From Takakia lepidozioides (taxonomy: Eukaryota; Plantae; Bryophyta), in the NCBI GenBank assembly GCA_030704615.1, contig CM060734.1:29574001-29638000 (forward strand): a stretch of 64,000 nt of DNA. The letters are read 5' to 3'. The notes under the pieces are model-generated. The model was given only the letters and a program-made list of their open reading frames with translations. It was not told the origin of the DNA and made no database searches. Of the stretch, positions 1,011 to 30,480 are shown one piece after another. Position 1 is the first letter of the stretch, and each line of letters opens with the position of its first letter. Position numbers and translations under genes: made by a program.

Positions 1011-1331
1011 ACTGCTGTTTGTCTCCTTTATCTGCAGGGTTCATGAGATGCACCATTTTGAACTTTTTGCACACCCAAACCTCAAACCCAGTCATTATTG
1101 GAAGCTAAAGTAAAGTGTAGAAAGAAATAAAGAACTTAGGTGTAGATGTGTACCTTATATCTTAGGCTCTAACGGGAGGACGGTGGGGGCTGCCTGCACA
1201 TGAGTGATAGGCCTTGATGCAGCCATCCTCTTGGAAAAAGAGACCTCTTTAGACTTAGTATGTGGACTGCATAGCATGTGGACTGTAGGTGACCTCCAAG
1301 TCAGCCTTAGTCTTTACTTAAGTAAACCAGT

Positions 1332-1416
1332 TGTCGTGCACCTAAGCATCCTGCCACAACATACATCGCTGTCCACCATACATTCTAAGCACACAATCCT
1401 AGAAAGCTATGCCACA
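1332..1416 (-). repeat. LTR segment Y, outer copy (85 bp)
   Basis: Direct repeat of 1786-1870, 4 mismatches in 85 bp by eye. Confidence 0.9.
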
Positions 1417-1418
1417 AT

Positions 1419-1783
1419 AGATAATGAAAGTGAACACAATAGAAACACTTCACTCTTGAATCCACTCAATCACATAAACTAAGTCAAGCCAAGGGCACCC
1501 TTGCTAAGGGAATCCACCCTACAAAGCCCTCAACACACCCCTTCTCAATACCTAGAGCTATGGAGGTGAGAGATGCTCATGGAGGCTCAACTACAAGAAG
1601 ATGAGCCCTCCTCAACACTCACAAGGGGAAAACCCATCCCCATGTGCCAAGTGAGGTTTGACACCTAACTTGGCATGTGAGACCAAATGAAGTCCCAACA
1701 CACAAAATACAAATATAAATATCCAAAATGTCCTAGTTACTAGAAGTAGGTAATTCTAGTTAACCATGACTAAAACCATGACA
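1419..1783 (-). repeat. LTR segment X, inner copy (~365 bp)
   Basis: Direct repeat of 9502-9865 with about a dozen differences; ends ...AAAACCATGACA on the + strand. Confidence 0.9.
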
Positions 1784-1792
1784 GCTGTCATG
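1777..1792. other. Palindromic Y/X junction CATGACA-GC-TGTCATG (putative intact attachment site)
   Basis: Perfect 16-bp palindrome joining the sequences that form the element's right end (..CATGACA) and left end (TGTCRTG..), separated by GC. Confidence 0.8.
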
Positions 1793-1870
1793 CACCTAAG
1801 CATCGTGCCACAACATACATCGCTATCCACCATACATTCTAAGCACACAATCCTAGAGAGCTATGCCACA
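1786..1870 (-). repeat. LTR segment Y, inner copy (85 bp)
   Basis: On the minus strand it starts TGTGGCATAG, immediately after the PPT. Confidence 0.9.
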
Positions 1871-1881
1871 ATCGCCCCCCT
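1871..1881 (-). promoter_or_regulatory. Polypurine tract AGGGGGGCG-AT
   Basis: Purine run followed by AT and then TGTG; the same sequence occurs in copy 2 at 28933-28943. Confidence 0.75.
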
Positions 1882-2189
1882 AGCTGATGTTTAGGTCCTT
1901 CTAACACCGGATAGCTGACAAGTATCCATCTCAATAAGATTATCGCTTGGTCTTCAATCGCACATCTCCCAATTTTCTAAAGTATATGGATCAAGAGGCC
2001 GGGTGCAACGAGAGCCCCATCGTTAGTCGCCTGTTTGCAATCCATGATCTTCAATTGAGTATCCATGGCGTTGAGCTCCCACCGGCTAGACCTTGGATCA
2101 CTTGTCAAATACACCATTGGCGTCCACTACCTATGGCCAAGGCATCGTGGTCACAACCAGTCCCCTCCCACTTGAACCTCTTGGCTCGT

Positions 2190-2720
2190 GTAGGAACCGC
2201 CATTGGTACAAGCAATCCTTCCCATGTTGGTCAATCCCCCAGAATGTCGTCTTTTGCTTGTCAGCCTCTTTGATTGGCAACCGGTGGTAACCGAGTCGCA
2301 AGTCCAATGTACTAAACACCTTTGCATGCCCAATAGCATCAAAGATTTCTTCTGGAGTTGGCATGGCATATCTATCGGACTTAGTCGGACGGTTCACAGG
2401 ACGATAGTCCCCACACATCCTTCTTTCTATCCAATTGCCATAGATATCCTTCTTAGCTGGCATCACCGTTGCCGAGGCATACTCCCCGCCTGACAATTCT
2501 ACCAATCCAGCTTCGAACAACTTCATAGTCTGTGACTGGATCAAAGACCTCTCCATGTCACTATACCTATAGGGCCTTCGAAAAATTGGCGTATCACTTG
2601 CCAAATCAATACGAATCTCTTGGCCCTTCAAACTCCCCAAATCCTTCAAACTGAAGGCAAAACAATTTCTATAAGCCCTTAGAAATTGCTGGATCTTTCG
2701 ACTCTCTCCTCCGGTGACTC
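2190..2720 (-). pseudogene. Ty3/gypsy reverse transcriptase, N-terminal half (truncated before YxDD)
   Basis: PIFRRPYRYS...RMCGDYRPVN...DRYAMPTPEEIFDAIGHAKVFSTLDLRLGYHRL...KTTFW...LYQWRFL, then an abrupt join to pre-integrase sequence. Confidence 0.93.
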
Positions 2721-3174
2721 TAGGTCCAACATCTGGTTCCCAGTTGTCCTCAGTGATTGCAACCTTGGGTACACCAGGCTTGGCGGTAGGAGACGCATCC
2801 TTTGGTTGCTAGATAGCAATCTCTTGGGCCTTATCCGTCCACCCTGACCGTGGCGTAGCCTCCATTTGCTCCGCCATAGCTACATTGAGAACATCATCTG
2901 GGGAAGAAACATTCTCAACCTCTTCAAAAACATTGGCCACCTTGGCCTCCAACTGATCCTCAGTGTATGGCTCTCCCCACTCCTCATATTGCTGCTTGAG
3001 AGATCCAATGACTCTCTCTTTCCACATCTCATCCCACATCTGCCATGGGTGTTTGCACCCCATGATCTTGTGCCCCCACTCACTGCCTCAACCATCCCGG
3101 TTGGCAGAGGGGATACAATATCAAATGGGAGTGCAGAAGTAGCCACCACTGTTTGCAACCTCCGTTGCTCAGCC

Positions 3175-4129
3175 ATGCACAAGCTAATGATCCATGTCAA
3201 GCAATTTAGATCCATTGCTTGATCCAACACATGTCGGCGTGATGCCTCTGACAGAGCTGGCACAACTGTAGTGCCCGTGGCAAATTCCTTTGCCCGCTCT
3301 CGCTCATCTGCATTGGGCTCCACCAATTGCTGTAGCACACTGTCTCAAATCAACCCAGGACCATTGTCTCGAAAAGCATGAGACAAGGGAAAGCTCATGA
3401 GCGTAGGCAAGGTCGCACGTGGCTGCCCCACTCAATTGACCACTGCTAGAGGTGGACGGTCATCATGTCGCACCCTCTGTGGTTGCCTCCCTTGGTCCAA
3501 AATGCCTCAACCGTGAGATTGGGTGGTCGTTGAATAGAATCGTATACTCTCTTGAGCAGCTTTGGTGGTGCAAGATTGGTCCACCACAATCGAGGTCAAT
3601 GCGCGCGTGATCCCACCGCTGCTGCATCCAATAGCACCGCCGATCCAATCCAAGACCGTACCTGATGCACACTGGCCATAACCCTGGCCCGAGAGTTCCC
3701 TATAAGAGGAACATTCTCCAAGATATAGGCTAGAGGTTGCACTTGCCTTGTCTGCAAGTCACGCAACACTCTCAACATCTCCCAAAACAAATGCGATCGT
3801 GCATCATGCAAGCCATTCCCATGACCTGCGGAAGAATGTCCTTGGCAAGGCCATCCGACTATCACCAAGTCAATGGCACCATGCCGGCCCAAATCATCCG
3901 CCCCCAGCATGGTAATGTCTGCTGGCAAGGCCTTTTGGTACCCTTGAATTGCTGAGAGATGCAACAACTCAGGATACTGGTGTGTGAGCAAGACAACGTG
4001 GCGAATAGAAATACGCCAAGCTATCTCATCCTTCTCCACATACAAGTACTTTCGTACTTTAATCCCAGCTTGCAACACTCCTGCAAGCCCAGTGCTCATG
4101 CCTCTAAACAGGTCTAGCAAACAAATCCC
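3175..4129 (-). pseudogene. C5 cytosine DNA methyltransferase domain (DNMT3-like layout) inside the retroelement polyprotein
   Basis: Motif I LDLFRGMSTG, II YVEKD, III DIT, IV GWPCQGHS, V DARSHLF, VI ILENV, VIII AH*PRLWWTNL (TGA at the expected Arg), IX/X ERERAKEF...SRRHVLDQAMDLNCLTWII. Confidence 0.92.
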
Positions 4130-4519
4130 TGAGTCAGGTGGTTGCCAGGTAATGGGCACTGTGTCCAAATGAGCTAACTGAGGAGGTCCAGGTGATGTCA
4201 CTGAACTCCCCTCACTTACCAATGGATAGGCCTCCTGCCATGCTTGGTGCACACACTCGCCTGCTACTCGATGCAAATTCCCAACTGTACCCCACAGTGG
4301 AATATGAACAGGCACATGAGGAAGCAAATCAGCCTTGTATGCCAATTGTTTGTCCTCATCAGGTGGTGGCCTATCATCTGCATGACTATTGCCCTCCAAG
4401 AGCTCACCACCCCAAGCCACCACCCCTGAGAATGCAGCCAATGTGGGCATCATGTTCCTATGATCCACCGCTACATTCCCAATAAACCGCACTGGGAGCA
4501 GTGCACGTCGACCATCCCC

Positions 4520-4900
4520 TGACTGTCATTCCGGCCTGTAGGATGTCGTTTCCTCCCAAAAGTCCAAAGTAAAGCCTATCGGGTATAACACAACCCCACC
4601 AATAACTTATAAGCACATCATAAGACATCGCGTCTGTAACAATGGCTTTAGCTCTCATGACAGAGCCATCTGTAGGATAATCTGGCTGCAATCGAATAAA
4701 GAGCTCATGGCGTGTAATCCCTCGTGCCTTCTCTGAACCGCCCAAAGATGTTTGAATTTGGAAAGGGCAAGGCTCCAAATCCGCCTCTGTAAGGCCCAAG
4801 CCTGCAATTGCTGCTCTCCCCAACATCAATGGATGTGCTCCCGTGTCCAACAAGACCCGTAGTGGCCTATACCTCCTCCCGGCTGGGCTACCCAACTGAA
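4520..4900 (-). pseudogene. Retroviral-type aspartic protease
   Basis: RVLLDTGAHPLMLG (DTG at ~4840-4848) ... YDVL; after a small indel the frame runs on into the DNMT ORF. Confidence 0.85.
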
Positions 4901-5399
4901 ACACACCATCCTGATTGTCCACCAAGACTACCCCAAGAGTCACCATACTATGCTCAATGGCTGGTCTAGCTGGCAACTCCTGCAACCTTGCAGCTGCCGC
5001 TTGCCATGGCGCAGTTGTGGCTGTCTTCATCCTTGAATCCAGGGCATCCATGCACTGCACCTGATCCGCTATCCCCGCAGATAGTGCCGATGCACCACCA
5101 CTCTCACAGTGTGTAGCTGCCAATCTAAACACTGCAGCTAGCCGCATCCTCGGCATTGCAATTGTTATGGCAGAAAACAATGGAGCTTGGCAAATTGCCG
5201 TAGCCGCCCCCAACAATGTACTGGCTACACCTTGCTTTGCAGTACCACCCATTGGCATTTCCCGAGCCATACCAACTCTCCCCAATGACATTCGTGGCTC
5301 TACCTCTAATACACTTGGGCGAGCGGGTGCCATCGATGGCATAGTTGGTACTGTCTCAGCCAATGTGAAAGACTATAGAAGCCTTGTCTGCCGACTTGC

Positions 5400-7037
5400 T
5401 TCCCCTCTTTGTGGATCAAAATCCACATTCGCTCCTCTTGGCTTAGGAGCACGTGTTGCTGCTCAAGTGATTGCAGCTGCAGAGTCCACATGCAATGGTC
5501 CTACAAGTGCGGCTCCACACATGAAGCCCATACCAATCTGGTCTTCCCTAGGCATAGGAGGTTGTGCAGGTGGGGCTTGAACCTCAGGCCTTGGAGCTAG
5601 CGCAACATGAGTAGTGGCCATGGTAGCAAGACGTTGCTCTAGCTGGGCAAGCCTATCCACCATGCCGTGGTCATGACCTTGTCCCTGACCCTGTGCTCTT
5701 TGGTTTTGGTTACGACCTCCACCACGACCTCCACCATGACCTCTGCCTCCTCTACCTCTCTGGAATACATTGCCTCGTCATCGGCCACCATTGTTTCCTT
5801 GGAACTGGCCTGGCCGTAGCTCAGGATGCAAGTCATAACAATGGGTCTCTTCATGCCCATACTTGCCACAATGCCTACACTGTGGTTGTGTAGGCTGTGC
5901 CTGTGCCGGCCCTTTACCTCTCTCCGAGCAATCTCTCTTAACATGGGGTCCTCCATAATCCCAACATGTCACTCCCGACTGTTGTTGGCCTGAGAATGAA
6001 GGAAGTGACCTCTACAATTGAGATCCTCTCTGTCCTTCCCTGGGCTTCACCTGAGCCCCTTTGTTGCCTTGAGCACGTTGGGGTAGTGGTTGTTGTTGGC
6101 TAGGAGCCCCACTTCGTTGTGTCTCCTTACCAAACCCCACCATGACCACTCGTTCCTCCACCATATTGAGCTCTATCCGCTCTGCCAGCAATAACACGTT
6201 TGCTAAGGTGGGTTGGGCCACCTGTAGGAGAGTTGCATCCCGCACCCTTCTCCTCAGCTCCTTGTCCAATATCCCATACCAAAATTGGACTGCTTGAGCT
6301 TCCGTAACCCCTTGGGTTACATTTATCAATCGCCTCATGCGTGTGTTCCCTCAAACTCTCGGTAGGCTTTCGTTGGAACTCTTGCAAGCTCCGCAATTTC
6401 TCCGTCCTTATCCCCTAGTAGTTTCTCCTTAACTCCTCGAAGAACTCCACAACTGGGTTAAAGGCAGGCACATGTGTTGGTGCTGCAGCATGAGCTTGGG
6501 TGGACTTCCCAGCTCCTGTTCCACTTGACATCCCACTGCTGCTTGCAGAAGCTGCCGGTGTCACCACTGCCCTTGTGCCTCTAGTGATGGAGACATAGTC
6601 AGGTGACCAATACACTCGTCATTCCTCAATCTCCACCTCATGTCCCCACCTAAACTCATGGTAGTCATCCATGGGCGGCCCCTCAAGGTGCTGAAACAGT
6701 CCCTTCCACGCCATAAAAGGCGTAAACAGTTGTGGATTGTGCATCTGCTGCAAATCACACCAACTATCAAACTCATGTTTGAAATCATCAAGCTCGATGG
6801 TGCCCACAGCTCCAGAGTACCGACATGGCCCCTTGGTAGCTCCATACATTTCCTCCATCGTATCCCACAACAATGGCACGGAAATGGCACCCTCGGCGAG
6901 AATCCTCCTAACTCTGAGTCTGAACCTTCCTCAGAAGACACTGAAGGTGAAGGTGGCATAAACCGTACACCTCGTCTTGTATACCCACTAGTATCGCTGG
7001 TGCTCGTACCGGCACTCTCCTCTGCAACTGGTGGCAC
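5400..7037 (-). pseudogene. Gag with two zinc knuckles (frameshifted)
   Basis: YSGAVGTIELDDF..., LQEFQRKPTESLRE, knuckles CWDYGGPHVKRDC and CRHCGKYGHEETHC; collinear with the gag of copy 2. Confidence 0.85.
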
Positions 7038-7779
7038 CTCCGTGATGAAAACTCACAACCACACATGTTGTAAACCTGTCTCTAATCCCCATTTCCACAA
7101 GGTAACCGGGTAGAGAACATGTTGCGGCTTATGGCTTAGATTACTAGGTTCGTAAATAAACCTGCACTTGTATCCACCGCAAGCACTCCTATGGTCTACT
7201 GGTCATCAACCCAGCCTCACCATAAGAGAAACAATGATGGTCTGACTGGTCATCACCCCAGCCTCACCACCGACAGCACGCTCTAGGATTGACCGGTGAT
7301 CAAATCCGGACCAACCTCCTATGAAAACAAGCGCCCACACAAAGCTAACATGACGCACAGTCAAGCATGCAGGTGTGGAGGAGATCCAAACACAAGAAAA
7401 TCAAGACAACAACTCCCCCACACCAAAAACACTCCACAGTGTCGCTCCTGCAATGATAACCCAGCCCCAACCCGGACTGACTCTTGCCTCCACCTACGGA
7501 AAGGTTTTGGCCTACAGAGAGGGTGAAAGACTACAAGGAAGAGAGACTAAAGCAATTCCTAATCCCAGCATGCTCTCATCCCACTACCCTATCTCCACAC
7601 TCTCTTGCTAGAACAATAGACAAAACTACCTTTCAAGGGTCTCTCAAATAACTCTCCAGGAGCCCTCAAGAATATGTTTTTCAAACAATCTCACTAAGGC
7701 TCCCAATCCTTGCACAATGGGACTCCAAAACAGTACACCAAGGCCCCAAGAGCCTGCCAAAACTTAGCCCTCGAGGACC

Positions 7780-8090
7780 CCAAATAGTCCCTCACACAAG
7801 TCGCCAAGACTCCTCAAGCTCGCCAAATATTGGCCTCTAAGGATCCCAAATAATCCTCCAAAGAACTTTAAATGGTCCTCCAAATGATCCTCCAAGGACC
7901 CCAAACAGTCTTCCAAGGACTCCCAATGGTCCTCCAAATAGTCCTCCAAGGACCCCATATAGTCCTCCAAGGACTCCCAATGGTCCTCCAAACAGTCCTC
8001 CAATCTAAGGACTCTTCCTATGTCACCACGTTCCCAATGTGTTCCCAATGCGTTCCCAAATTCCCAATGGGTTCCCAAAGTTCCCTACGA
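7780..8090. repeat. Tandem repeat array in the 5' leader of copy 1 (CCTCCAAGGACTCCCAATGGT-like units)
   Basis: Repeated units are visible; ORFs 7764..8078 and 7872..8201 are periodic translations of them. Confidence 0.8.
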
Positions 8091-9487
8091 ATATTCCTGA
8101 AAATATGCCATAGTATTCCCCCAATATTCCCCTGGGCCTATACGTATTTCCCTTGTATTCCCCTTGTATTCTCCGTAGGAATAGCCATTTCCCCCTCATA
8201 GAGTAGTTCAGTTCCTCCTAAGGTTTAGCCATTTCCCCCTAAGCTTTAGCCACTTCCCCCTCTATTTCCTTGAGGTTTAGCCTTACCAAGCTAGGGTTTG
8301 TGCTCCTTGGGGCTCTATGCTTAATCCCCTCAAACATCCATGAATTCTATGGGGTACCAAGACAAATTCCCTTGATCTTCTTCACCTTAAGCTACTCAAG
8401 TTTGTCTCTAACTCAACTAGCAATGCATTGGCCACACAACAAGCTCAATTTCTCATTAGAACTCAAAATCAAGCTTGTATCTCCTTTGGCAAGCCACCAA
8501 GCCTTGTCTCCTCTCAAGCCTTGGTCATTCAAGCTCCCTTCACTTGCTAGCTCAAGAGCCACTCCTCTCAAGCTTGAAATTGAAAAGCTCAAGCCAAAAG
8601 CATGCTTCACACATGCATCACCTCATACACAAGGGAATCAACTTGCTCCCTTCACCTTCTAGCTCTCCTCAAGCTTGAAGTTGGAAGCCACACTTGGGAA
8701 GCATGCTCCACATAAGCATCACTTGTTTGATCAACCATCCACCACAAAACTTAAGCCAAAAGGGAATGAATACATGAGCTTCACCTTCCCCTTCCTTGTC
8801 TTGTCACATGATAATGTATGGTTGAAGTTGTTATGCATGCCTTGAGCCACAATTTTTTTTCTTCATGAAAACCACTTCCAATGATCTCCCATATGTGCTC
8901 CAAGCTCTTCAATGCTCTAGGCTTGGTTTCACATCATCATGGATAGAATTTTCACCCATATGCTTTCCTTCAAACCTCTTGAGCTTCCTAATGCTCTCCA
9001 AGTGCTTGCCCTTGTTGTTTTCAAGCCCAAGCCTACAACATCCATAATTGAGCTTGCTTAACCCTAGATTGATAGTGAAATGAGCACTAACAATCCTTTA
9101 GTTGCTCTCCACATGCCATGGCATACACCATTGACTCCATAATGCATTGAAAAGATTCTCAAACCCTAGAATCCATGCTTCCACACACACAAGACTTCCC
9201 TCTTGCAATCCTTGCAAATCTTGTGGCAACAAGCTCCTTCTTGAGCTCTCCAACACCTTGATGTAACACCACAAATACCTTTCCTTGCAACCCTTGTGAT
9301 CTATAAGAGCTCCATCTTTGAGCTCTCCACCTCCTTAGGGCAAAGCAATATCTCTCAAAGCCCTAACACCACAAAGATATTCTTTTGCAATATATGCAAC
9401 ACCTTGCAACACAAGAGCTATCTTCCCAAGCTTTTCAACACACAATTGCTAAACTAATCCTTACACTCCGCACTCACAAGCATAAGG

Positions 9488-9501
9488 TCATCTTCTTGTA
9501 G
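9488..9501 (-). promoter_or_regulatory. Non-tRNA primer-binding site of copy 1 (CTACAAGAAGATGA)
   Basis: Abuts the ...TATCA end of segment X and is the exact reverse complement of 9673-9686 inside X. Confidence 0.75.
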
Positions 9502-9865
9502 TGATATGAAAGTGAACACAATAGAAACACTTCACTCTTGAATCCACTCAATCACATAAACTAAGTCAAGTCAAGGGCACCCTTGCTAAGGGAATCCACA
9601 CTACAAAGCCCTCAACACACTTCCTCTCAATACCTAGAGCTATGGAGGTGAGAGATGCTCATGGAGGCTCAACTACAAGAAGATGAGCCCTCCTCAACAC
9701 TCACAAGGGGAAAACCCATCCCCATGTCCCAAGTGAGGTTTGACACCTCACTTGACATGTAAGACCAAATGAAGTCCCAACACACAAAATACAAATATAA
9801 ATATCCAAAATGTTCTAGTTACTAGAAGTAGGTAATTTTAGTTAACCATGACTAAAACCATGACA
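9502..9865 (-). repeat. LTR segment X, outer (5') copy
   Basis: Repeat of 1419-1783; the minus strand starts TGTCATGG and ends TTTCATATCA. Confidence 0.9.
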
Positions 9866-10636
9866 CAGTGCTTGCTTAAAATCATCTGAGATCTCTGCCC
9901 ATTGCAAATATCTAAGCATAACACTTCTCTATGAGGATAATTTGGTTTCATCAAGGCAATGTCAACACAAATACTTCCCTAAAAATCATATGTTTCAAAA
10001 CTGAGACAAATCCAAGTATTCTACCATAGCCCAAATGGGGTGTACTGTCATGTTTTAAAACAAAACAAACATACTATTCAAAAATGAAACCATTCAACTG
10101 GGCTGTAAACTAAGATTGATCCAAGTCAAGATGGGTCTTCGAACTCCTCTGTATTAGATCCAAGGATAGATGGCTGAGTCATGCAATGTGTCCCACTGAC
10201 TAGGAACTATGTATTTGAATGACTACTACCAGAGTGGTATGTAAGTGATTAGGAATGCAACTGGGGAGTACATACCACTCTTCCTGTGATATGTAAGTGA
10301 TTAATCTACCACTAGTGGATTGAGAGAGGAAGCAATTGTGTCTGTTTTCCTACTGTCACAGTCTTACATATTATACCACTAGAAGAGTGGTGTGTAAGTG
10401 ATTCATACATTCCTAATACATTCCCATATAATTCTCATACAACTTGAAGATTCAAGCTTAAAAAAACAGAATAGAATCTCGGAGAATAAGTGCTGGAACA
10501 GAGTCAACAAAATCCAACCATAAAAGTTCTCCTTCTACATCTACACTACGTCCCCGCAGGCATGCTAAGAACACTGAACTATTTTCCTGCCTTTTCCTCA
10601 CTGCTAGCAATGTCTATGCCTGTACAAACCACACTT

Positions 10637-10800: not shown

Positions 10801-12774
10801 ATATTTGGGAGTTGTCTTTGAAGGCGGCGCAATTGGTGCACTGCATGTGGCAGTATCAAGAGCAGCTTTCTCAGCCTACAAACGTCACGCCCAACACCCC
10901 TTAGCAGGACTTCACATTTAGCAATGCAAATGTCACAGCCTTATAGTACCCAACGTGGGTAAATGACCACAAACACCGTATTCGCTAAAAGTGTACTTTG
11001 AAAATGTCATTTTTTTTTCCAATTCCCCTAGAGGTTTTCATCAACTACAACATATAATTAACATTGGTGAAATTGTGCACCACCTTATGTACATGTACAT
11101 ATAACTTTCATATAATCATAGATATTACAAAAATCAATTTATTTTGATGAAGCAAATATAGAAGCTTATGATAATATTTGATCCCCAAAATTTAAAGTCT
11201 TCTAATGAAAACCTAGTATGTTTATGATTCCAATATATGCTATGAACCTGCAACCATTTGTGAGAGGATATGCACTGTTGGATTGAATATATTGATTATT
11301 TAATAGATAATATATATTCAATAATTGAAAAGTTGATTTTGTTTATGATTATTCATCCTTCATTAATTAGGATTAGCATCCATGAAATACAATCATCCAT
11401 CAAGTTATCCATCAAATCATCCATGTTTTATTGAATCTCCAATTGCAACAAACATGGGCATATATACAAGCACTGTGTACATATGGCTTGTGTAATTTCC
11501 TAGTAAACTCAAGTAATCATAGGCATTCCTAGCTTCCAACCCCACTGTGGAACCATATTTGGTAACTCCTTCATCCAATTCACATAATCCTCATCTAAAG
11601 TTTGTATCTATCGCATCCCTGCTTGTGTGCCATAACGATCCACCTCCGATTCAGTAACTCCAAGATTTAGGTCTTGTCGAAACCGTCGTCCATCCATGGT
11701 ATAATGAAATCCATCCACAAGGTTCATCTCTGTTCTTTCACCAAATGGATTGGCCCCTTCAACGCCAGCTGGAATGTAGTCTGGATCCGACTCTATCAGA
11801 GTTTGTTGTTTCAATCCCAATTAAAATGACGGATGTGTCTTTGTGGTTTGCCCCGAATGAGAGATTTCGTGGTGTGGTATATTTACCTGTAATGGGGTTA
11901 CGGGTGCCGCACTTGAGCCCTCTAAGAAATGAGATCCTTCTATGTCAAGGCGGATTCTCTTTCCTCCAGTACTTGGTCGACCATTGGAACCTTGTTTCCT
12001 GACTTGTTGAAATTGCAGCTGAGTTATATTTGCATCATCATTCTCCCCATCTTCATTGTCCCTTTGTGAATTGCTCATGTCATCGCTTACCTCATCATCT
12101 CCTCCATCTCCATTGGCCAATTGCATCAGTCAATTTCAAAGTCTTGTGGCATGACTGGCTCTGGTCACACGTTCGGTTTTTCAGCTGTACTTTTTTTCAG
12201 CTCCCTTTACGACGGCTGAGGCAGACTCCTCAGCTTTAGTCCCCTTTTTACATGCCAGAAACAACATGGTATAGTACATGAGTACTTACCATACATGTTC
12301 ACAAATGCATTCATGCAAGTATGTCACGCACACCAATAAATAGATCATACATGAATCTAACAAAGTCACAAACAAAAAGCCGAAGAAAATGAAACAAGAT
12401 AAAGTACTCTAAATGATGAGTTACCTCTTTCTATGGGGAAGTTGCCTTCACAGGAATATGTACACTCTGATCAGCCAACCCCCTACTGTCACCCTTACTG
12501 GCACTCTCAGTGGTGGGGGTTGGCAGTAACGCGATCTCGCGGTGAGACAAGTTCTTGATCGTGTCCGCTAAGAGTAAGGTGTGATAGACAGGCATGGTAC
12601 ACCGAATGTACTTCTACTTCAAATGAAGCTTTATACCCTCATGCTAATTACTGGGGGAGTTCTTGCCTTCCGCCAAACGCATGTACAACACCGGCACTAC
12701 GGGATCCTCTCCACCCACAATGCTGCTGCGAAGAGTTACCTCTACATCTTGCTCCTACAACATCTCCCGATTAT

Positions 12775-15700
12775 ATGTCACTGAGCACTACACAGCTTGT
12801 TTGTATATTACATATGAAGTTGCTAGGTTGGGATTCCCAAGTCATATTCTTTGATTATAACATTTTTATTTACCCAGCTGGGGTACTTTCACTTCTGGCT
12901 AACACCCAGAGCAATATCCTCACACTACCTCATACCTCAACACTACTCACACTTTCCGTTACTCATACTCCAATACTATTCTCAATCAAATCTTACATTC
13001 ATTGTACTTTAGTACTACTCTCCTACAAATGGTACACTGCTCATAATTTGATATTGCCCTCAAACAAAATTTCCATTGTTCAGATTCATGTACTGTTTTC
13101 AAACAAATCTTATATTGCTCATAACTTATTCCCTTTTTTATTATTCCTCACGCACACTACTCATGTACAGTATACGAATATATCACCCAAGTATAACTAT
13201 CATATACACAACTCAGATACACTACTCGGACTCGCACAACACCCGAATATACCACCCAAATATACCTCTCATGCACACCACTTAAATACACTACTTGGAC
13301 ATACTATTCATTTGTACTCTTCAGCCTTGATGCTATTCCCAAACACTTTTTCCGCTTCCCATACCACATTAATACTGACAAACAATTCTTTTGCTACTTA
13401 CACCTCGATGTTATGTCTTACAAACAATTCTGATGTAGTCTATACCTCCAAACTACTTACAAATAATTATTACCTTGTTCAATTATCCCCACAACTATCT
13501 CCTCACCCACACAAACCCGCGCAAAAAGTATTCACAAATCTCCCCCGCTCTCACAACCTGATAGCACTTAACCAATATTTCATCCATCCACAGACGCTCT
13601 CATCCATCCCATCATCCACAATCATTCACGCACCCCACCCTTATACCCAAATACTCAATATTCTCATTAAATATCCCGCCAAAAACTTCAAAGTTTTGGT
13701 ATTTCTACCACCCCAACCCAATTTATCCCCAATATATACCCCCCATTCACTCATCAACCACCAGCTCCACAACTCCTCATATTCACCAACCAACCTCCAA
13801 ATCTATGTCCCACTCACGCATTCCCTATCTCCCTATTCACATAATCCAACCATATCCCAATTACCTCCACCTTTCCAAAATACCATACCAAATACATATT
13901 GACCCCCTTACATTTGCCGTTCACCCACATGGAACCCGCCCTCAAAACCTTCTAAAATCCAAGCACTACTACCATCATCCCCCCTCACCCGACACGGCAT
14001 ATAGAATGACATGTATTGACCTCATACTTCTCAGATGTGGAGACATCCACCCTAACCTAGGGCCCTCTTCTATAGATGATTTTGTCAATTACCCACCGGC
14101 CCAAAAGATAGATATGCTTTATATTTCCAAAAAAACACCATCTCCCTCACCTACCCATACTAGCACTTATCTGACCATTTCCCCCCTTCCTCCCCAAAAC
14201 TTTTCCCTCTAACCCCACACATCAGACTCCCCCTCCACATCAAATCTCCACCTTTGGCCTTCCCGCTTGCCATCTCCCAGCTCTTACTCGTGCCACACAC
14301 AGACTCAGGGTTTTCCACACCCAACACATCCTCTTTGCCCTCATCATTACTATCTCCCCGCTACCCGAGACATGTAACATCTACTTTGAATGTCACGCCC
14401 TTTCCCAACTCCGTTCCCTACTCTACACAACCTACATAAACTGCCCTCGCTCCCCAACAATTACCTAGCCCCTCCACACCACCTCTCCGAATTACACTCC
14501 TCGCTTCAACTCCTACAATCCAAACCCGGAGTGCTCCACACAATCCTAACGACCATCTTGCCTCACTTACCTCCCCGACTCAAGACCTGCCAGCCCTCTC
14601 TAATAAATTCCCATATTTATCCAACGACATCATCTCTGCCACCCTAAAGGCAATAACCCCCCTCCCTGGATTCACAACTCCCCCCATCCCCCCCATCCCC
14701 CCAACCCTCCCACCCTCGCCTACTCACTCAAATGCACCTACACCCCCTCCTCCTCCGCCTACAATCTAAATACCAACTCCCTTAGCATCATCACCTGGAA
14801 TGCCGGTTCTATGGCCACTAGTATACAGAGCCTCATAACATTCTCACAGACTCCGTCTCCCCGCACATTATTCTACTACAAGAAACTAAACTACACACCA
14901 ACCGCCCTAATAGCTCATACATAAACAAGCTACTCCCGACATACTACTTCCTGTATGGCAACCCTTTGTCGGCTCCGCAATGTCTTAGGCGGCGCTCGGC
15001 CCCATACAGCCCCACCCGGGGAGGCGTTGCCATTGGCATCCTACGTACCCATCACTCTCCCAGCACCACCACCAAGGTGAACGTCCCCATCCCTCTTCGC
15101 TCTCATCTCCAAATTATCCAACTTTATATGTCTGCTCTTAACCCAATTACCATCATTCACCTATACATGCCCTCCCACACTGATGACCTCCAACTAATCC
15201 CAGATATTATGCTTGCGATTTCCAATACGATTACCCATCCTGATCAACAGCATCACCACTACATTCTCGCTGGTGACTTCAACAGAGATATTGCCCTCCT
15301 TTGACACTCCTATAAAGGCTCCCACCAACCCCCATCCCCTTCCGATCATGATTGGGCCAAGTTCACTCAACAACATCACTTTAGCTACATACCCGCAGAT
15401 CACCACTACTCTAGGCAAGGTGGTCTCCACTACTCCTCCCTCAGCCTCCTTGATGGTTTCTATCTCAAAACCAGCACCGAGATCCCGTCCTATCTCCGCA
15501 GCCACATTCACATTGACAACATTTGTAACTCTCACCACTACCCAATATCGATCTCTCTTCCCTTGTTCCCTTCCACCCCCTCCCTTCTATCCTTAAACCC
15601 CCCCTCCCCAACCCAGGTTCCTATCTCCATTACCCAAACATAACATCACAGCCTTCCAAAACCACTTCCAACCTATTGCCTCTATCCTAACACAAAACCT

Positions 15701-17870
15701 CTCCCATATCCTCTCCAATACGAACCTCTCACAGGAACCCGACAATACCTGGCTCGAAGCAGAGCTCACCCTCTCTTCCATCTTACTACAAATGACCAAA
15801 AGCGTTCTCACCACGTGTGCCGCTCCCCCGGACCTGCCCCAAATCTCCCGCTCTAAACAAAACGGGGGATATCTTACCCGTTCACAAAAGTGGGCCTGGA
15901 CCTCCCACCTAAACACCTATCACACTATCCACAGAGCTCTCACCGTTATTCCTAATTCTTCCACCCTCCCACTACACATAGACTGGCGCTCCGATCCCCG
16001 TATCTCATGCCTAAACTCCCTGTTTGTCTGCAGCCCGATCATGCCCCCTCCCAACGACCCCTCCAATCTTCCTAGCTGGATTGCTGCTCTCTCCAAGCTG
16101 GGGAGAGACGCAAAAAAAGTCGCCTACATTATTACTAAACAAAAAGCTACAGCTAATCACAAAAGATTTATTTCATCCTTTGGCCAATTACTACATGACC
16201 ACCCCAAAAAAGCCCATAAAGCTATTTTCAACCCTGCTCTAAACCCACCCATTGACTACCTCAAACATAGATCCGGCCAACTGCTCACCACCCCTAATGA
16301 CATCCCGATTTGATTCCAAATGCTATACTACAAGCTCTCGACCCTGTACTTCACCTCTTTCTCTTCAAATTTTTTAAACTTTGCTACCAACTCCGCCGGA
16401 TCCCGCACATATGGAAGCATAGCCGCACCATTCTCCTCTTCAAGAAAGGCGACCCTACGGATCTTAGCAATTACAGACCCATTGCTCTTGCTAACACTAT
16501 CTATAAACTATTTACCAACACCCTTACCAAGATGTTGTCCAACTATGGTGAACACCACCGCATTCTTAGCAACCCGCAAGAAGGCTTCCATGCCACACGT
16601 AGCACTACCAGACAAATACAATATGTGTTATCCGCCCTAGAAGACGCCAAACTCACAAACAAGATATATATCTCATATATATCGACTTCAAAAATGCTTT
16701 CGGCTCTTTAGACCACCCGCGTCTACTCGCCATTATGACAGACCTAGGCTACCCATCAGATGCTATACAACTCATCGGTAATATTTACACTAACAGCTCC
16801 ACGGAATATACAGGCTCATATTATGGTTCCACCCCTCCCATCCCAATTCTACGAGGCACTATCCAAGGCGACACCCTTAGTCCTTACCTCATTATCATCT
16901 TCCTTGAACCCTTGCTCAGATGGATTGCACGCGACAAACTTGGATACCAATACAAAACTTCTTCAAACGAAATTTCTGCTACCGCTTACGCGGATGACCT
17001 TGCCATCCTTGCGCACAAACCCCAACACCTCAACCGGCAAGTTGAAAAATTATCACGCTTTAACCAATGGTCTGGAATGGAACTAAGTCTTCATAAATGC
17101 GCCGTCACCGCGGCTACCCACCGCAGTAAGCTTACCAAATCTTCTATTGCGTCACACTGCAAACTATACATCCAATACCAGAACAAACCATTTCCCTTCC
17201 TAGGCCCTGATGAACCCTACACATACTTAGGTATTCAACTTGTCCCCTCGCTCACATGGAACGTACAGAAAATCGCTACACTCACCAAACTAACTAATTG
17301 AAGCTTAGCTCTCCTCAAAGCCCCCATAGCCATCAGGCCCAAACTCTCCCTCATAGAATCCGTCCTAAAACCACAGGTCCAATACTCATTCCATGCGGCT
17401 CCCTTCTCCCTCCCGGACATCATTCAAATCGACAGACAAATCATCCAACTCACTAAGCGCATTTGTGGTCTCCCCACTAGCACTCACAATGCTCTCACTC
17501 AACTCCCCACGGACAGATATGGCATCGGTACTAGTCCCTTAATAATGTCATACTCGCGCACTCTTGGCTCCCAACTACTCGAAGCCCTCAACGACCCGGG
17601 TCGTCTAGGTCTCATCTACCGTGGGCTACTCAAACACCTGGCCTCCAAGTATAATGGACTTCACTCACTACCTTTCCTCCACTCACAGTCTTGTCTCCAT
17701 TCCCCTACCGCCCGCTCCCTATCATACTCCGCCAGTTGAAAACCAGTGTGCAAACCGATCTCCCTGATTACCCCAAATCCATATCTCCCCTAGAACAGGC
17801 TTGGCATACTAGCTCTTTCCTCTCCCAATTCGAACGCAAATTCCCCCGCCAAAAGATACTTATCCTTCAG
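12775..17870 (+). mobile_element. Degenerate non-LTR retrotransposon (APE + RT; RTE-X-like), with internal deletion and 3' truncation
   Basis: APE motifs: IITWNAG (~14785), LQET, YILAGDFN (~15260). RT motifs: WKHSRTILLFKKGDPTDLSNYRPIAL, QEGF, IDFKNAF, RGTIQGDTLSP, AYADD, YTYLG. Many frameshifts. The 5' boundary and clade are uncertain. Confidence 0.85.
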
Positions 17871-19175
17871 GTGCGGCCCGAGGCTCTGTACCGAAATTTC
17901 CGTAATACCCGACCTGAAGGGCCCTACCCTATACTTCAGTTATTTTATCTAGAGCGTGAAACTAGTGAGAAAATATCCAACTAAATTATGGATTTTTAGT
18001 ACTTAAACTTAGCAAGTTGTTAAGTGAGGTGTCAAGGTAATTTGATGAATCCAGATAATCCCTTTGCGAGATCAGGGAGATCCTTCATCGCTTCCGAAAC
18101 AAATGGACTGGATCCCGGAAGTAAAGGATGCTGCCCTCTCATGTCCGACTTCCACATTTTGATCCCTCCCTCAGCTTTCCGTATTTGTTTGTGCTGCATA
18201 ACAGGCCACTTGTCATCCCGATCATACCTAGAACGGCATGAGTGTGACCAACAAGTAGATAAGAGACAAAAACCTCTTTGAAAATCTCTTAAATTGCTAC
18301 TAGTAGTGACCAAAATAAATTTGCAAACCTGCATTTGTTGTCGTTCCCACAGTTGTCAAGTTGGACATAAAGAACAGGAGGCAAGGTTTTCGGGTGAACT
18401 GGTTCAAAATGACAAACAAATTTCCTTTCCGACTATATCATCATCATCATCATGGGACAGACAGGACGACGGGTTGAAGGAAAGTTGTATTGTATTGCAG
18501 CGGTGGCCGTGGACGCGCAGTGTGGACATGGCAGTATTAGTCAGGGGCCCATATGCGTGATAGAATATGGAGTATTTTGTTTGTTCTAACATAGGAAGGA
18601 AAGAGCTGCTCTAGCTTGAACCTATTGTTCTTCGCAGCTGCAGTGGCGGGAATCTGTCTGCGAAAATCCTTTCTTTCTGTCTCTCGCTGTCTCCTTTTCA
18701 AGTGCGCATACAACGGAATTCGGGGCGGGGTTTGTTGTTTGATGGTTATGTAGCACATTTGCTGCTCATTTGCGCGTTGGGCAAGTTTCGGTGTGGTTTT
18801 GGAGGTCACCGTGTGAGAGAGGGGAGTAGTTGAGGGTGATCGTAGTTGAGTGTTGTGTGAATTTCTTCACTTGGATGTCCGACTGTGCAGCAAATCTTTT
18901 CTTCGTTCAGTTGAGGAAGTGCAGGAAGACCTTTGGTCAGTAACTGTCGAAGCATGGACTGTCTGACCTACTTGGTACTTCTGGAGAACTGGATTCGACG
19001 CCACGTAGGTTTCTCATACATGTTTTCCTCCTGTCTTTCCGACTCACCTCAGACCGTTTTTCTTTTGTCTCTTTGTCCTGCTTGTCTTTAATGCACCAAT
19101 CCTCTGTATTTTTCTTTTACGATCCCCGTTGTACAACGTGTGGGATCAACAGATTGCTGCCTGCGCGTCATTTAA

Positions 19176-27500: not shown

Positions 27501-28744
27501 TTATACCATTGAAACAATAGAACCTATGTAACAGTGTATAGTGGAGAGTGTCTCAAGTGGGTCATCGGTTTGCCACAGTATGTTGCTCTATTTGATTTCA
27601 CATGGTGGAATTGAGTGAAAGGCAATGTAGGTGACTCTGCATATTTTTCCCGTAAAGAATTTGAAGATGCTAGATTGCATAACTCCTATTCTTCAGGCTT
27701 ATCTCTTTTTAGTCCTTTTTGGTGTGTCTTCTCTGCAGCTATCCTCTCTGTGGCTTCCTTTTTCATAGACATATCAAAAAGGTCATTCCGGAAGAGAAAC
27801 TTGGAGCCTATTGACCTTTAAGGAGCCAAATGTATATCTTCAACCTCAATTTTGTACAAGAACCTCCTTTCTATTTCAAGATTATCTTGATATCCTTCAA
27901 GATAGGAAGAAATGCATAGCAAAGACTTTTTTATACCTATAGTCAATTGATGAATATTGTTTGTAAGGTAGAAATGATCATCGCCGACAATCTAAATTCA
28001 GATCTTCAACTTCCATGTTTTAGATTTGTTCTAAACTTGGGACAATCTCAATGATTCTTGACTTTCATACAAGTTTGCTAAAAATAACTTGCGACAAGTA
28101 AAAGTACATGTCGCACAATTTCCAGTAACATGTTAGATTTTTCCTACATTATCAACATGGAGATACTAAAAACACAATTAGTGCGTACATTTGTTACTAA
28201 AAGCATGTTGTATATATGTAGACCTGTTTTAGGGTTTTGGAACATAATTAACGCGATGTAATTTGATATTCTTAGCTGTTGTATAAGAAAATGGCTAATA
28301 TTATGGTAAGTAATTAAACGGTCAATATAGGGCTTCGTTGTACTATCTGAGATTGGTAGGTGAAGCTTCGGCAGTATGACTAAACTAAGATACTCAGATT
28401 CTCAAAAATCACTGAGTGAACATTACATCTCTTCTTCCCAGTTGTCCACAATCCTTGCCAACCCTGTTAGTTTCATATTCCACGTTGAAGGACATGATTA
28501 CATATTACTTAAGATAGTGAAGTATTTGTTTCTATGGTACACTAGATTAGGAGAGGTTTTCATTTCAAATTTGAAAGATGTCTAACTTGCTTACATCTCT
28601 TAATAATTACAAGTAATGTTTCTCCATAGAGTTCTATGAAAGTAATTGACAAAAACAAAAAGATCTTTAAAGACGTGGATGATGCAATTTGAACTCAATA
28701 ATTTACAAAGTACTTTTCCATGGTTGTAATCATGTTAACTAGAT

Positions 28745-28932
28745 TGTCGTGCGCATACATATCGCTACACAACTACATCGCTGTCCAAAACCACACAACA
28801 CATGTGCACACCACACACTAGTATACCACTAGTCCACCACTAGTCCAGCCACTAGTCCAACCACTAGGCTACAACTAGTCAGTCACTAGGCTGCCACTAT
28901 GCTGCCCACTATGGCAGTCACTAGTTCACACA
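28745..28932 (-). repeat. LTR segment Y of copy 2 (188 bp, expanded by CCACTAGT-like repeats)
   Basis: Lies between the PPT (28933-28943) and the TSD; shares TGTCGTGC and ACATCGCTGTCCA with Y of copy 1. Confidence 0.75.
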
Positions 28933-29192
28933 ATCGCCCCCCTAGCTGGTGCTTAGGTCCCTCTAAGTCCAGGTAGCCACAAGATGTGATAGTGACCATA
29001 GCCTCACTAAGTCCTCCACCACTATTCCTACTACACTCAAACTCGATAGATCAAGAGGCCGGGTGCAAGAGTTGCCCCATCGTTAGTCGCCGTCTTGCAA
29101 CCTGTGAACTTGAGCTTGGGATCTCATGTATTGACTCCTATGAGCTTGGCCTCCCATGTCTTGTTAGCTGCCTCCAGTCATGTCCACTACCA

Positions 29193-29345
29193 CTATCCCA
29201 AGCAGTGTGGACACAACCAATCTCCGTCAGGAACCTTCTCAAGAGGTGGTGTCAAGCATCCCATATGCCAACCCCTTGAGCATCGATCACACACCAGCAT
29301 GGTGGCTGCCCCTTTGGCAGACCCACAGAGCATGCTCCTCAAACC
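29193..29345 (-). other. PHD finger (C4HC3) at the integrase C-terminus
   Basis: (S)MLC-GSAKGAATMLV-CDRC-SRGW-HMGC-LTPPLEKVPDGDW-LCPHC, with the conserved Trp; the first Cys is replaced by Ser. Confidence 0.9.
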
Positions 29346-30480
29346 TGCAGGTACCACTGTCAAGTTTGGGTCAACTCTGCCATCGACATTGGGAAGGTGA
29401 CATGGCGCACAATTACGCACATGGTCCTTCCAAGTCTTGCCATCCCGACCCTCTAAGATCAGGACCCCTGAGGGCAACACCTCTCGAACTCTCAGAATAA
29501 CACGCCCTGTAATAACATCCAGAGTCGTAGGAGCAGTCTGCTGCAAATAAACATAGTCACCAGGGCTAAACCTCCGAACCCCAGGACGATATCCTCCACC
29601 ACGTATAGTGGCATACCTCAACGTATCACGGTGCTGTGCAATGCAAGGTTCTCAAAAGCCATGGGCATGACTTTCTTGAACAACTCTGCACGCTGATCAC
29701 ATGCACGTACCCACACGTCCGGATTGTCAAGGTTAAGGACTTGAGTAGTGTCCCTACGAATGGCTGCAGGCAAATCTGGCTCTCGGCCAAAGAGAAGGAA
29801 ATATGGTGAGAAGAGGCAAGTGATGCTTGTTTGCTGAACCTGTAGCCCATGGCTAACCAAGGAACCTGAAGATCCCAATCTCCTAGGTGTCCCTTCTGCA
29901 AGCCATACTTGCGCAAACCCCTCTTCACCGTCTGAACAACTCTCTCTGCTAAGCCATCGGCCTCAGGATGATCCCGAGAAGTGGTGCGGTGGTCTATCAA
30001 GGCTTTATCACACAAAGCCTGAAACTCCCCCAAAAATCTTCTCCCTTGGTCCGTGAGTACCTCAGCTGGAGCACCAAATCGGCTAAGCACACGATCCAAA
30101 GAATGCATACGCAGCCCCTCACTAGCCTTGTCAGGCAATGGAACAACTCAATCCACTTAGAGAAGTGCTCCACCATCACAACACATATCTGTGGTGGCGC
30201 ATAGTCAGTGGCAACGGTCCTGCGAAGTCAAAAGACTCACCTGTAGCCCAATCCCATGATTGGTAAAGGATGCAACGTGGTGTAGGGGCGTTGAATGAAG
30301 CACGCACCCTGTCACACACCATGCACCTAGCCACGAACTGTTGCACCTCTGTATGCATACCACGCCACCAATACTGCCCCTGCAGTAAACTGTGAGTGAG
30401 TCGCACTCCAAAATGCCCCAACTCCTCATGGTGCATGCCGCACTAACCGTGCACGCTGTGTGGGGTGAGGCACAATCCTC
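29346..30480 (-). pseudogene. DDE (rve) integrase with HHCC zinc domain, frameshifted
   Basis: HEELGHFG...YWWRGM...CMVC; DFAGPLP; VEHFSKWIE; FGAPAEVLTDQG; HPEADGLAERVVQTVK; SPYFLLFGREP; FSPGDYVYL. Confidence 0.93.

Follow-up and report, generated by a model that had tools for sequence, protein, structure and literature searches.

In a lineage of gypsy retrotransposons that carry a DNA methyltransferase, the repeat produced by reverse transcription is demonstrably different from the unit that the integrase inserts, judging from the sequences of integrated copies. As read from these copies, integration uses the two halves of a short ...CA-NN-TG... palindrome inside the LTR as its ends. On either side of them there is always a short duplication from a staggered cut, which is 4 bp long in all verified cases. 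The layout points to insertion, by an ordinary integrase, of a DNA copy with joined ends (circle-like).

Two sets of ends in one element

The element E1 is a decayed gypsy-type retrotransposon of Takakia lepidozioides, located at positions 1328-9869 of the window (the whole stretch of 64,000 nucleotides that was analysed). Its coding strand is the minus strand, on which all features of E1 and E2 lie except the target-site duplications (TSDs) and the palindrome. The order on the coding strand is TSD-A1-primer site-internal region-polypurine tract-B1-GC-A2-AT-B2-TSD. Modules A and B correspond to X and Y of a first-pass annotation, which had proposed this split-LTR layout and whose every coordinate was reproduced base for base.

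The TSD, CAGT, is identical at 1328-1331 and 9866-9869. The outer A1 (9502-9865) starts with TGTCATG on the coding strand and forms the left integration end. The right integration end is formed by B2 (1332-1416), the 3' terminal module, which finishes with ...CACGACA. The outer ends, TGTC...GACA, have 7-bp inverted tips and lie directly against the duplication. The inner A2 (1419-1783) is 97% identical to 9506-9865 over 360 nt, and the inner B1 (1786-1870) is 95% identical to 1332-1416 over 85 nt. At the B1/A2 boundary a perfect palindrome, with 7 nt on each side of a GC spacer (1784-1785), is observed at 1777-1792; it corresponds to the uncut internal attachment site. At the A2/B2 joint, the U5 end is fused to the U3 start with an AT (1417-1418) between them, which resembles a 2-LTR circle junction. 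An identical AT is present between the polypurine tract and B1 (1871-1872). We also considered the stretch 1332-1783 as an independent MITE or other insertion, an objection that the first-pass annotation had itself raised. Its two flanking 4-mers, CAGT and GCTG, do not match; it thus has no duplication of its own, and the idea was discarded.

The polypurine tract (1871-1886; coding strand ...AGGGGGGCGAT) is directly 5' of B1, where U3 of the reverse-transcription LTR begins. Directly 3' of A1 is the primer binding site (9488-9501), a 14 nt perfect complement of a putative self-primer within A1 (9673-9686). The same 14-mer is found in A2 at 1591-1604, and the predicted RNA fold pairs the primer site with the self-primer inside A1. 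A tRNA-type primer site was rejected, as the site is without TGG and shows a strong self-complement instead. The arrangement is common to five families (E1, E2, L004, L006 and a large metagenome family, family M). In each of them 11-16 nt directly 3' of A are a perfect complement of a site inside A, and this stretch begins without exception at the first base after A (offset 0). A G-rich polypurine tract directly 5' of B is conserved in these bryophyte and Scenedesmus families. In shuffle controls the self-complement was matched in 0/500 cases for E1, in 0/500, 9/500 and 3/500 for others, and in 0/300 for the best family-M copies. E1 and E2 show compensatory differences between primer site and self-primer.

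Since the polypurine tract adjoins B and the self-primer site adjoins A, the reverse-transcription LTR (U3-R-U5), as read from the sequence, is B + 2 nt + A, and the A|B joint represents fused cDNA ends. This agrees with the Y+X assignment of the first-pass annotation, as well as with its view of the X|Y join as an LTR-LTR-type junction. In L004, L006 and five family-M copies the cDNA ends are fused exactly at this joint. A single exception, the L070/L059 joint, still contains 9 nt from the primer site, together with about 5 nt of filler. Aberrant retroviral circle junctions likewise keep primer site plus filler.

Coding content and the nature of the integrase

The broken genes of E1 were searched piece by piece, as they stand. 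Pfam scans of its stop-to-stop ORF pieces gave weak protease and reverse transcriptase matches and no integrase match. The protease-like region (4608-5003) has a weak Asp_protease_2 match and aligns to residues 772-885 of P0038, where Asp_protease_2 is found. An N-terminal reverse transcriptase fragment (2191-2799) has a weak RVT_1 match and is matched by tblastn to the reverse transcriptase of P0038, P0101 and P0147. Between these two lies a frame-shifted C5 cytosine DNA methyltransferase region of pol (3102-4654; PF00145 at 3599-4525, E=1e-12). The rest of the reverse transcriptase, RNase H and integrase are absent, and about 1.3 kb present in E2 is missing from E1.

Because its own Pfam matches are limited to weak protease and reverse transcriptase hits, the identity of E1 was taken from its relatives. 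The protease-like, methyltransferase and reverse transcriptase pieces match gypsy polyproteins bearing HHCC+rve integrases, and the named homologues are from Marchantia, Calypogeia, Sphagnum, Scenedesmus, Haematococcus and Pleodorina. The intact relatives P0038, P0101, P0062 and P0147 contain RVT_1, RT_RNaseH(_2), Integrase_H2C2 and rve, with HHCC present and the D, D and E residues in rve. By sequence, the integrase of E1's relatives carries a PHD finger. The PF00145 domain is also found in P0038, P0101 and P0062. The methyltransferase is in the protease/reverse transcriptase interval in the E1 sublineage, and in the RNase H/integrase interval in other relatives. As E1 itself has no integrase, its insertion must have been catalysed in trans.

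A second element in the window, E2 (28741-38939), is a related short form, A-internal-B, and is 74% identical to E1 internally. Its TSD is AGAT at both ends, 4 bp long and different from the CAGT of E1. The A module (38619-38935) adjoins one AGAT, with the primer site (38607-38618) on its 3' side. The gag (33881-35263) and methyltransferase (31340-32338) regions are followed by an integrase with core and PHD finger kept (29196-30667). The same polypurine 16-mer is in the same place as in E1 (28933-28948) and adjoins B (28745-28932). The gypsy type given to E1 by the first-pass annotation is thus borne out by its homologues and by E2. Other content of the window is also of plant type, including a NAC-domain gene.

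The order A1-internal-B1-A2-B2 is the textbook order of PAT-like and Ngaro elements (PMC7192593, PMC5890265). We therefore considered an element of the DIRS, PAT, Ngaro or TOC type, in which a tyrosine recombinase integrates a circle site-specifically and the 4-mers at both ends would be a shared crossover core. Like the E1 lineage, PAT-like, Ngaro and TOC elements have joined element termini at the internal B1|A2 joint, and a circular or joined-end intermediate is implied. However, they encode a tyrosine recombinase and integrate without a staggered-cut duplication, whereas in the E1 lineage a DDE (rve) integrase is combined with TG...CA ends and a 4-bp duplication. No tyrosine recombinase (Phage_integrase-type) match was found in the ORF pieces of E1 and E2 or in the intact relatives, which bear HHCC+rve instead. 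The 4-mers vary from site to site and are absent from the element's own junction; they are therefore duplications and not a crossover core. In addition, a paralogous uninterrupted target site of L004, from Scenedesmus, holds one copy of the 4-mer. We consider the recombinase explanation highly improbable.

Recurrence of the split layout in relatives

The A-internal-B-NN-A-B order, with TG...CA ends and a 4-bp TSD, was also found in Scenedesmus, in the liverwort Calypogeia and in family M, which is moss-like. Overall, the layout recurs in mosses, liverworts and green algae. The 4-bp duplication is exact in 11 insertions (E1 and 10 others), with ends TGTC...(G/T)ACA. These include E1 (CAGT), E2 (AGAT), L004 (CGGC) and L006 (AATG), as well as L013, L033, L035, L068, L078 and L070. 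L030 has the same ends and a duplication matching at 3/4 positions (GGTA/AGTA). Chance is excluded, as the same geometry with a matching duplication recurs in 10 insertions besides E1. In every insertion looked at, the duplication flanks the B/A boundary, where the first-pass annotation had placed it for E1. Uncut ...CA-NN-TG... joints equivalent to that of E1 are present in L004, L006, L091 and family M. TG...CA is always found at the palindrome halves and only inconsistently at the cDNA tips.

The L004 repeats are 99.8-100% identical, from which the split layout, as far as sequence tells, arises at insertion and not by later rearrangement. This bears on a more conventional explanation, in which the true LTR is A+B and the copy was rearranged after insertion or misassembled, losing B at the 5' side and duplicating it before the 3' LTR. 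Such an LTR would start with TG, end with CA and place its 7-bp inverted tips directly against the duplication, as observed. It would, however, need the same rearrangement in independent insertions from at least four taxa, one of them with these nearly or fully identical repeats. The polypurine tract adjoining B and the self-primer site adjoining A locate the ends of reverse transcription at the A|B joint, and A+B followed by the primer site is seen in no copy. We find this explanation scarcely credible. Nor were full B+A LTRs at both ends, the ordinary arrangement that would have spoken against the first-pass annotation, found in any of the relatives looked at.

Family M shows how the copies vary. 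All of its distinct 5' ends (18/18) have the order flank-A, 3' ends of the B-A-B type occur in 6/18, and 11/18 copies are of the short form A-internal-B. The reciprocal form, A-B-A-internal-B, was found in none of the 18 distinct 5' ends. Haematococcus L090 resembles this reciprocal form at first sight. It is better explained as an A-internal-B copy that lies within the LTR of another gypsy element, of the chromo+PHD kind and on the opposite strand, and was left out of the counts. Marchantia L005 starts with TGTCATG... and ends with ...CGACA, as expected for the lineage. It was not counted, as a duplicated host stretch of about 88 bp flanks it beside an assembly gap. For Pleodorina L091 we found the 3' half B-GC-A-B; the upstream A1 was looked for and not found. 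The termini could not be seen in contigs L001-L003, which are too short and were left out.

Origin of the inserted molecule and precedents

In the textbook view, retroviruses and LTR retrotransposons integrate as linear cDNA by the LTR tips, and circles are regarded as dead ends. In the 1980s, integration of circular cDNA had been put forward for retroviruses, an idea that was later given up. In the mechanism that we favour, the substrate would be a cDNA with both termini joined; it could be a 2-LTR circle or an equivalent molecule with tandem LTRs. On it, the DDE integrase would make its usual two 3'-processing nicks, one after each CA of the palindrome. As these nicks would lie only 2 nt apart, the molecule would open there, giving two ends with a recessed CA-3'OH. 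The spacer of 2 nt would remain as 5' overhangs and be lost in repair, and the product would be A-internal-B-NN-A-B. This product could still yield a terminally redundant RNA, whereas the short form A-internal-B could not. The short form may come from a one-LTR circle, from a linear cDNA that was cut at each of its palindromes, or from a later B1/B2 deletion.

We judge it probable, with appreciable doubt, that joined-end cDNA is opened at the LTR-internal palindrome by the DDE integrase of a self-priming gypsy-DNMT lineage. This estimate is a joint one for the whole explanation, including E1 as a non-autonomous, internally deleted Ty3/gypsy element of that lineage with a C5 DNA methyltransferase. 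A broader proposal, that a whole green-plant Ty3/gypsy lineage obligately integrates joined-end (circular) cDNA in this way by an ordinary DDE integrase, is more tentative, and we would put it at somewhat less than an even chance.

The circle is something we infer from integrated copies alone. The first-pass annotation had proposed both circularisation and cleavage of an internal att site by a DDE integrase; the internal ends are well supported, and the circle is the less secure part. A 2-LTR circle contains two identical palindromes, and their random use predicts equal numbers of A-internal-B-A-B and A-B-A-internal-B. The latter is never seen, contrary to this prediction. Most family-M copies being short forms also counts against a circle, and the need for catalysis in trans in E1 is a further point against the favoured mechanism. 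Finally, the normal A|B joints of family M have the same length in 5/5 cases, which is more uniform than end-joining usually gives.

A rival explanation is a directional linear intermediate: the reverse transcriptase would directly produce linear cDNA in permuted form, without a closed circle. For example, the finished plus strand at the right end could switch once more to the left end and recopy B, with the integrase acting at or near true DNA ends. The absence of A-B-A-internal-B from the 18 5' ends, the frequent B-A-B at 3' ends and the uniform joint length would all be accounted for. The L070 joint, with its primer site and filler, is also compatible with copying of the RNA primer followed by a template jump from end to end. 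Against it, microhomology at the A|B joint never extends beyond 1 nt, and we know of no gypsy reverse-transcription scheme with a third transfer. Cleavage of the palindrome inside the left LTR is still required, since the B of that LTR has to be removed; the integrase must therefore recognise an internal site in this case too. We regard the linear route as unlikely, although it is a far more serious competitor than either the recombinase or the A+B explanation.

The joined-end mechanism has a biochemical precedent in the integrases of foamy virus and HIV-1, by which palindromic LTR-LTR junctions are cleaved (PMC1180852, PMC1905944). In retroviral 2-LTR circles, nicks made by the DDE integrase behind each CA of a ...CA-N-TG... 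palindrome turn uncut DNA into integration-competent ends (PMC1180852, PMC1905944, PMC4372172). This was found in cells for foamy virus and in vitro for HIV-1 integrase. In retroviruses the palindrome is the circle junction and cutting restores normal LTR tips. In the E1 lineage, by contrast, it is inside the LTR and a circle-type junction is carried into the genome. The lineage shares gag, protease, reverse transcriptase, RNase H, integrase, polypurine tract, TG...CA ends and a short duplication with canonical Ty3/gypsy elements. The latter have identical LTRs whose tips are the integration ends, whereas here only A is present at the 5' side, B-A-B at the 3' side, and the cDNA tips are not the integration ends.

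The E1 lineage resembles Tf1/sushi-type elements in lacking a tRNA-type TGG primer site; its 11-16 nt after the 5' repeat are complementary to a stretch within the repeat. In Tf1/sushi-type elements the first 11 nt of the transcript serve as primer. For Tf1, complementarity of the primer site to its own 5' repeat was reportedly described by Levin in 1995. Tf1 nevertheless has ordinary LTRs and integrates at their tips, and not at an LTR-internal palindrome as in the E1 lineage. Self-priming has been summarised (PMC5006619); similar modular LTRs in Dictyostelium DGLT-A were not borne out by this source.

The first-pass annotation knew of no earlier description. The layout itself had in fact been noted, in passing and without a mechanism. 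The legend of Figure 4c in de Mendoza et al. 2018 (PMC5890265) describes DIRS-like A-coding-B-A-B repeats with gypsy domains for KnitGypsy-Dnmt3 of Klebsormidium nitens. Compared by its published description, this element resembles E1 in its gypsy pol with an inserted Dnmt-type C5 methyltransferase, its repeats and its streptophyte host. That paper gives no duplications, primer site or polypurine tract analysis or integration model. In the literature on split repeats in integrase-bearing elements, we found only this legend and a 2026 preprint citing it.

In liverworts, chlorophyte algae and a moss-like metagenome family alike, the ends made by reverse transcription differ from those used by the integrase. 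Whether a DDE integrase uses the internal palindrome of a joined-end molecule as its normal substrate can be tested in Marchantia relatives, Scenedesmus and Pleodorina. Split-repeat architecture is separable from tyrosine recombinases, which bears on the origin of DIRS, PAT and Ngaro from gypsy-like ancestors. If circular integration is obligate, a split-repeat, circle-using architecture could precede the recombinase switch and be independent of it. LTR finders that expect two identical terminal repeats will mis-annotate such elements, and in the common A-internal-B form the terminal repeat is wholly absent.

Layout of the element and its integration ends

We redrew the map of the split-LTR gypsy element (E1, minus strand) by direct reading of 1200–2100 and 9400–10000, by a repeat scan and by self-BLAST. 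Together these exactly reproduced the first-pass map, in which our repeats A and B were called X and Y. Read along the plus strand, the left target-site duplication CAGT (1328–1331) is followed by B2 (1332–1416), the dinucleotide AT (between 1416 and 1419), A2 (1419–1783), a GC spacer (between 1783 and 1786) and B1 (1786–1870). A G-rich polypurine tract, reverse-complemented on this strand, starts at 1871. The internal region lies between it and A1 (9502–9865), and the right CAGT occupies 9866–9869. The coding strand of all four repeats is minus, and the order on it is duplication, A1, primer site, internal region, polypurine tract, B1, GC, A2, AT, B2, duplication. The A copies are 97% identical and the B copies 95%. 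The uncut B1|A2 joint (1777–1792) is a perfect 7+GC+7 palindrome. A tandem array of three 54-nt units (7834–8003) is present between the 5′ repeat and the gag position.

The host duplication directly borders TGTC..., where A starts, and ...GACA or ...GTCA, where B ends, in all complete insertions. These two ends are the halves of the palindrome inside the LTR. The duplication is CAGT in E1, AGAT in the related copy E2, CGGC in Scenedesmus sp. PABB004 (L004) and AATG in Calypogeia fissa (L006). In the large metagenome family M it is CATA (L013), AATG (L033), TGTT (L035), TTCA (L068), ATTA (L078), CACA (L070) and GGTA/AGTA, a 3/4 match (L030). An uninterrupted paralogue of the Scenedesmus target, 2 kb away, has one copy of the 4-mer. 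The flanking 4-mers vary by site and do not occur in the element's own joint; they are therefore staggered-cut duplications and not a recombinase core. This contradicts integration by a tyrosine recombinase, and no such enzyme was found in the ORF pieces of E1 and E2 or in intact relatives. The element is like PAT and Ngaro in geometry but differs in what defines them, being without a tyrosine recombinase and having duplications.

The 2-nt spacer (GC, or in some copies AC or AT) is confined to the uncut B1|A2 joint and is never seen at the outer ends. In Pleodorina starrii (L091, 16487–18510), a B-A-B 3′ end carries B copies that are 99.8% identical, and its uncut B|A joint forms a perfect palindrome (9+GC+9); A1 was not detectable upstream of the gene at this locus. 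The repeats of the Scenedesmus copy are 99.8–100% identical, so the layout arises from the insertion process and not from later rearrangement of a conventional element. Misassembly as its origin is contradicted by the comparative data on insertions.

Two further loci, left out of the insertion counts, have unusual surroundings. In Haematococcus lacustris (L090:2959–19443), a PHD-gypsy copy, TGTCACAG...GTGTCA, is flanked by TTAG and nested in an LTR of another gypsy, a chromo+PHD element on the opposite strand with a duplication of 5 bp (CTTGA). At the matching position, the second LTR of this host element reads TTAG-TGTGTC-TTAG. The Marchantia polymorpha member (L005) starts with TGTCATG and ends with ...CGACA, as expected, and is flanked by a duplicated host stretch of ~88 bp (7091–7178 and 17827–17914) in place of 4 bp. 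This duplication may be assembly redundancy, because an assembly gap (a run of N) lies just inside the flank.

Reverse-transcription ends and the A2|B2 joint

The polypurine tract is an identical 16-mer in E1 and E2 and directly adjoins B. Similar G-rich tracts adjoin B in the Scenedesmus and Calypogeia copies and in family M. No tRNA-type TGG primer site was found on the A side of E1 and the relatives examined. The 14 nt right after A1 in E1 are the perfect complement of a 14-mer inside A (9673–9686, also 1591–1604). The corresponding self-complement is 12 nt in E2, with compensatory differences, and 11 nt each in L004 and L006. In these four copies it directly follows A, with no base between; shuffle controls for E1, E2, L004 and L006 gave 0/500, 0/500, 9/500 and 3/500. 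Family M has self-complements of 9–16 nt. The predicted RNA fold of E1 pairs the primer site with the complementary stretch in A (z = −2.2). A self-complement in this position is the signature of Tf1-type self-priming, here from a putative primer. With the polypurine tract before B, it makes the end of A the U5 end and the start of B the beginning of U3, so that the reverse-transcription repeat is B + 2 nt + A. The earlier proposal that Y+X is the true LTR agrees with this.

The palindrome halves are always TG...CA, while the cDNA tips (B start and A end) are not consistently so. We show that the ends of reverse transcription differ from those of integration, and that the integration ends carry the DDE-type signature.

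At the A2|B2 joint, the end of A and the start of B abut exactly in L004, L006 and five family-M copies, and the B side begins with the same first base after the polypurine tract as B1. The E1 joint holds AT, the same AT that separates the polypurine tract from B1. A variant was observed at one locus sampled twice (L070:13680–13760; L059:5660–5740), where the end of A is followed by 9 nt of primer site, ~5 filler nt and the start of B. It resembles aberrant retroviral 2-LTR junctions, and its form shows that the joint is newly made from cDNA termini and not copied from a parent. Rearrangement of the element is seen upstream of it, where an inverted A fragment comes before a partial A2.

Coding content of E1, E2 and their relatives

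Stops and frameshifts occur throughout the internal region of E1. Among its stop-to-stop ORF pieces, a C5 DNA methyltransferase (DNMT) gave a clear match (3599–4525, minus, E=1e-12), protease and RT matches were weak, and neither an integrase nor a tyrosine recombinase was found. The methyltransferase piece, used as query in a full HMMER search, recovered long polyproteins. One relative (P0038) has the order zinc knuckle, protease, DNMT, RT, RNase H, HHCC, rve; two algal relatives (P0101 and P0062) have RT, RNase H, DNMT, HHCC, rve and a C-terminal PHD finger. The DNMT of the window's sublineage lies between protease and RT, as in P0038, and that of the algal relatives between RNase H and integrase. 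This means that the same accessory domain has two placements among relatives.

By tblastn of these polyproteins against the window, E1 keeps a protease-like region (~4608–5003), the DNMT region (3102–4654) and only the N-terminal part of RT (2191–2799); the remaining RT, RNase H and integrase are deleted. E2 (28741–38939, same strand) is 74% identical to E1 over 4.5 kb by self-BLAST. It keeps a gag ORF, the DNMT region, a PHD finger and an integrase core in which the DDE triad survives as its second D and its E; RT and RNase H are gone. Its form is A-int-B (int, internal region), without any terminal repeat, and repeat-based LTR finders would overlook it. A ~1.1 kb tandem array of 10-nt and 51-nt C-rich units (35983–37083) lies between its 5′ repeat and gag. 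Given the domains of the relatives and the losses in the window copies, the earlier label "gypsy-type" is right for the family, on the basis of gypsy polyprotein relatives and the E1 and E2 remnants, and the two copies in the window are both relics that are not autonomous. Among named homologues, those of Marchantia, Calypogeia and Sphagnum are closest.

Integration route and comparison with known elements

The family-M census covers 80 loci from one scan, on metagenome contigs of a plant. All 18 distinct 5′ ends are host flank|A. The 3′ ends comprise 11 B|flank (flanks all different), six B-A-B and one primer-site variant. A search for ordinary LTRs in most relatives, which would have spoken against the first-pass reading, was negative, since no family-M copy has B+A at both ends. 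The commonest state is the short form A-int-B, from which a terminally redundant RNA is impossible; such copies are either dead on arrival or derived by B1/B2 deletion.

From the integrated copies, we infer that the integrase substrate is a molecule with joined cDNA termini. The integrase would nick 3′ of each CA in the palindrome, these being its two normal nicks. With a 2-nt spacer, the nicks alone would open the duplex and leave two recessed CA-3′OH ends with 2-nt 5′ overhangs. Processed ends normally have this geometry, and it would explain the loss of the spacer. The proposed chemistry has precedent, as palindromic LTR–LTR junctions are cut by foamy-virus integrase in cells and by HIV-1 integrase in vitro (PMC1180852, PMC1905944, PMC4372172).

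This joined-end model is weakest on directionality. The palindrome is present twice, in identical form, in a 2-LTR circle, so that both A-int-B-A-B and the reciprocal A-B-A-int-B are expected; no copy of the second is present in the family-M census. One possible reason is faster collapse of the reciprocal form, because of its longer repeats (339 bp vs 115 bp). The main rival is a directional intermediate, for example a linear cDNA with its right end extended by one more template switch, which would account for the missing form.

By its genes the element belongs to Ty3/gypsy, but it breaks the rule of integration by LTR tips. The closest existing description is one sentence in the legend of Fig. 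4c of de Mendoza et al. 2018 (PMC5890265), which gives KnitGypsy-Dnmt3 of Klebsormidium a DIRS repeat structure and gypsy domain composition. A 2026 preprint mentions a "streptophyte Gypsy-DNMT3" without structural detail. Our literature search found no analysis of how such elements are primed and integrated or of their target duplications. The first-pass annotation knew of no description; this stands for integration, but the repeat layout had been recorded in 2018. E1 is thus a new bryophyte member of an already recorded kind, its likeness to the K. nitens elements being one of described structure. The present evidence extends this kind to liverworts and chlorophytes, and adds three points to the literature: duplication of 4 bp at a palindrome inside the LTR, self-priming and the circle-type joint.

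Elsewhere in the window, host genes encode a WD40-repeat protein (48291–49919, minus) and a NAC (NAM) domain protein (54671–55918, minus), which mark it as land-plant DNA. Other retroelement remnants are an RVT_1 ORF and a zf-RVT ORF (16735–17301, plus, and 63244–63990, minus). Over a 6-kb stretch (12000–18000) the GC skew is very strongly negative and reaches −0.57. At 58724–58959 a 124-nt unit occurs in two tandem copies that match almost perfectly (99%).
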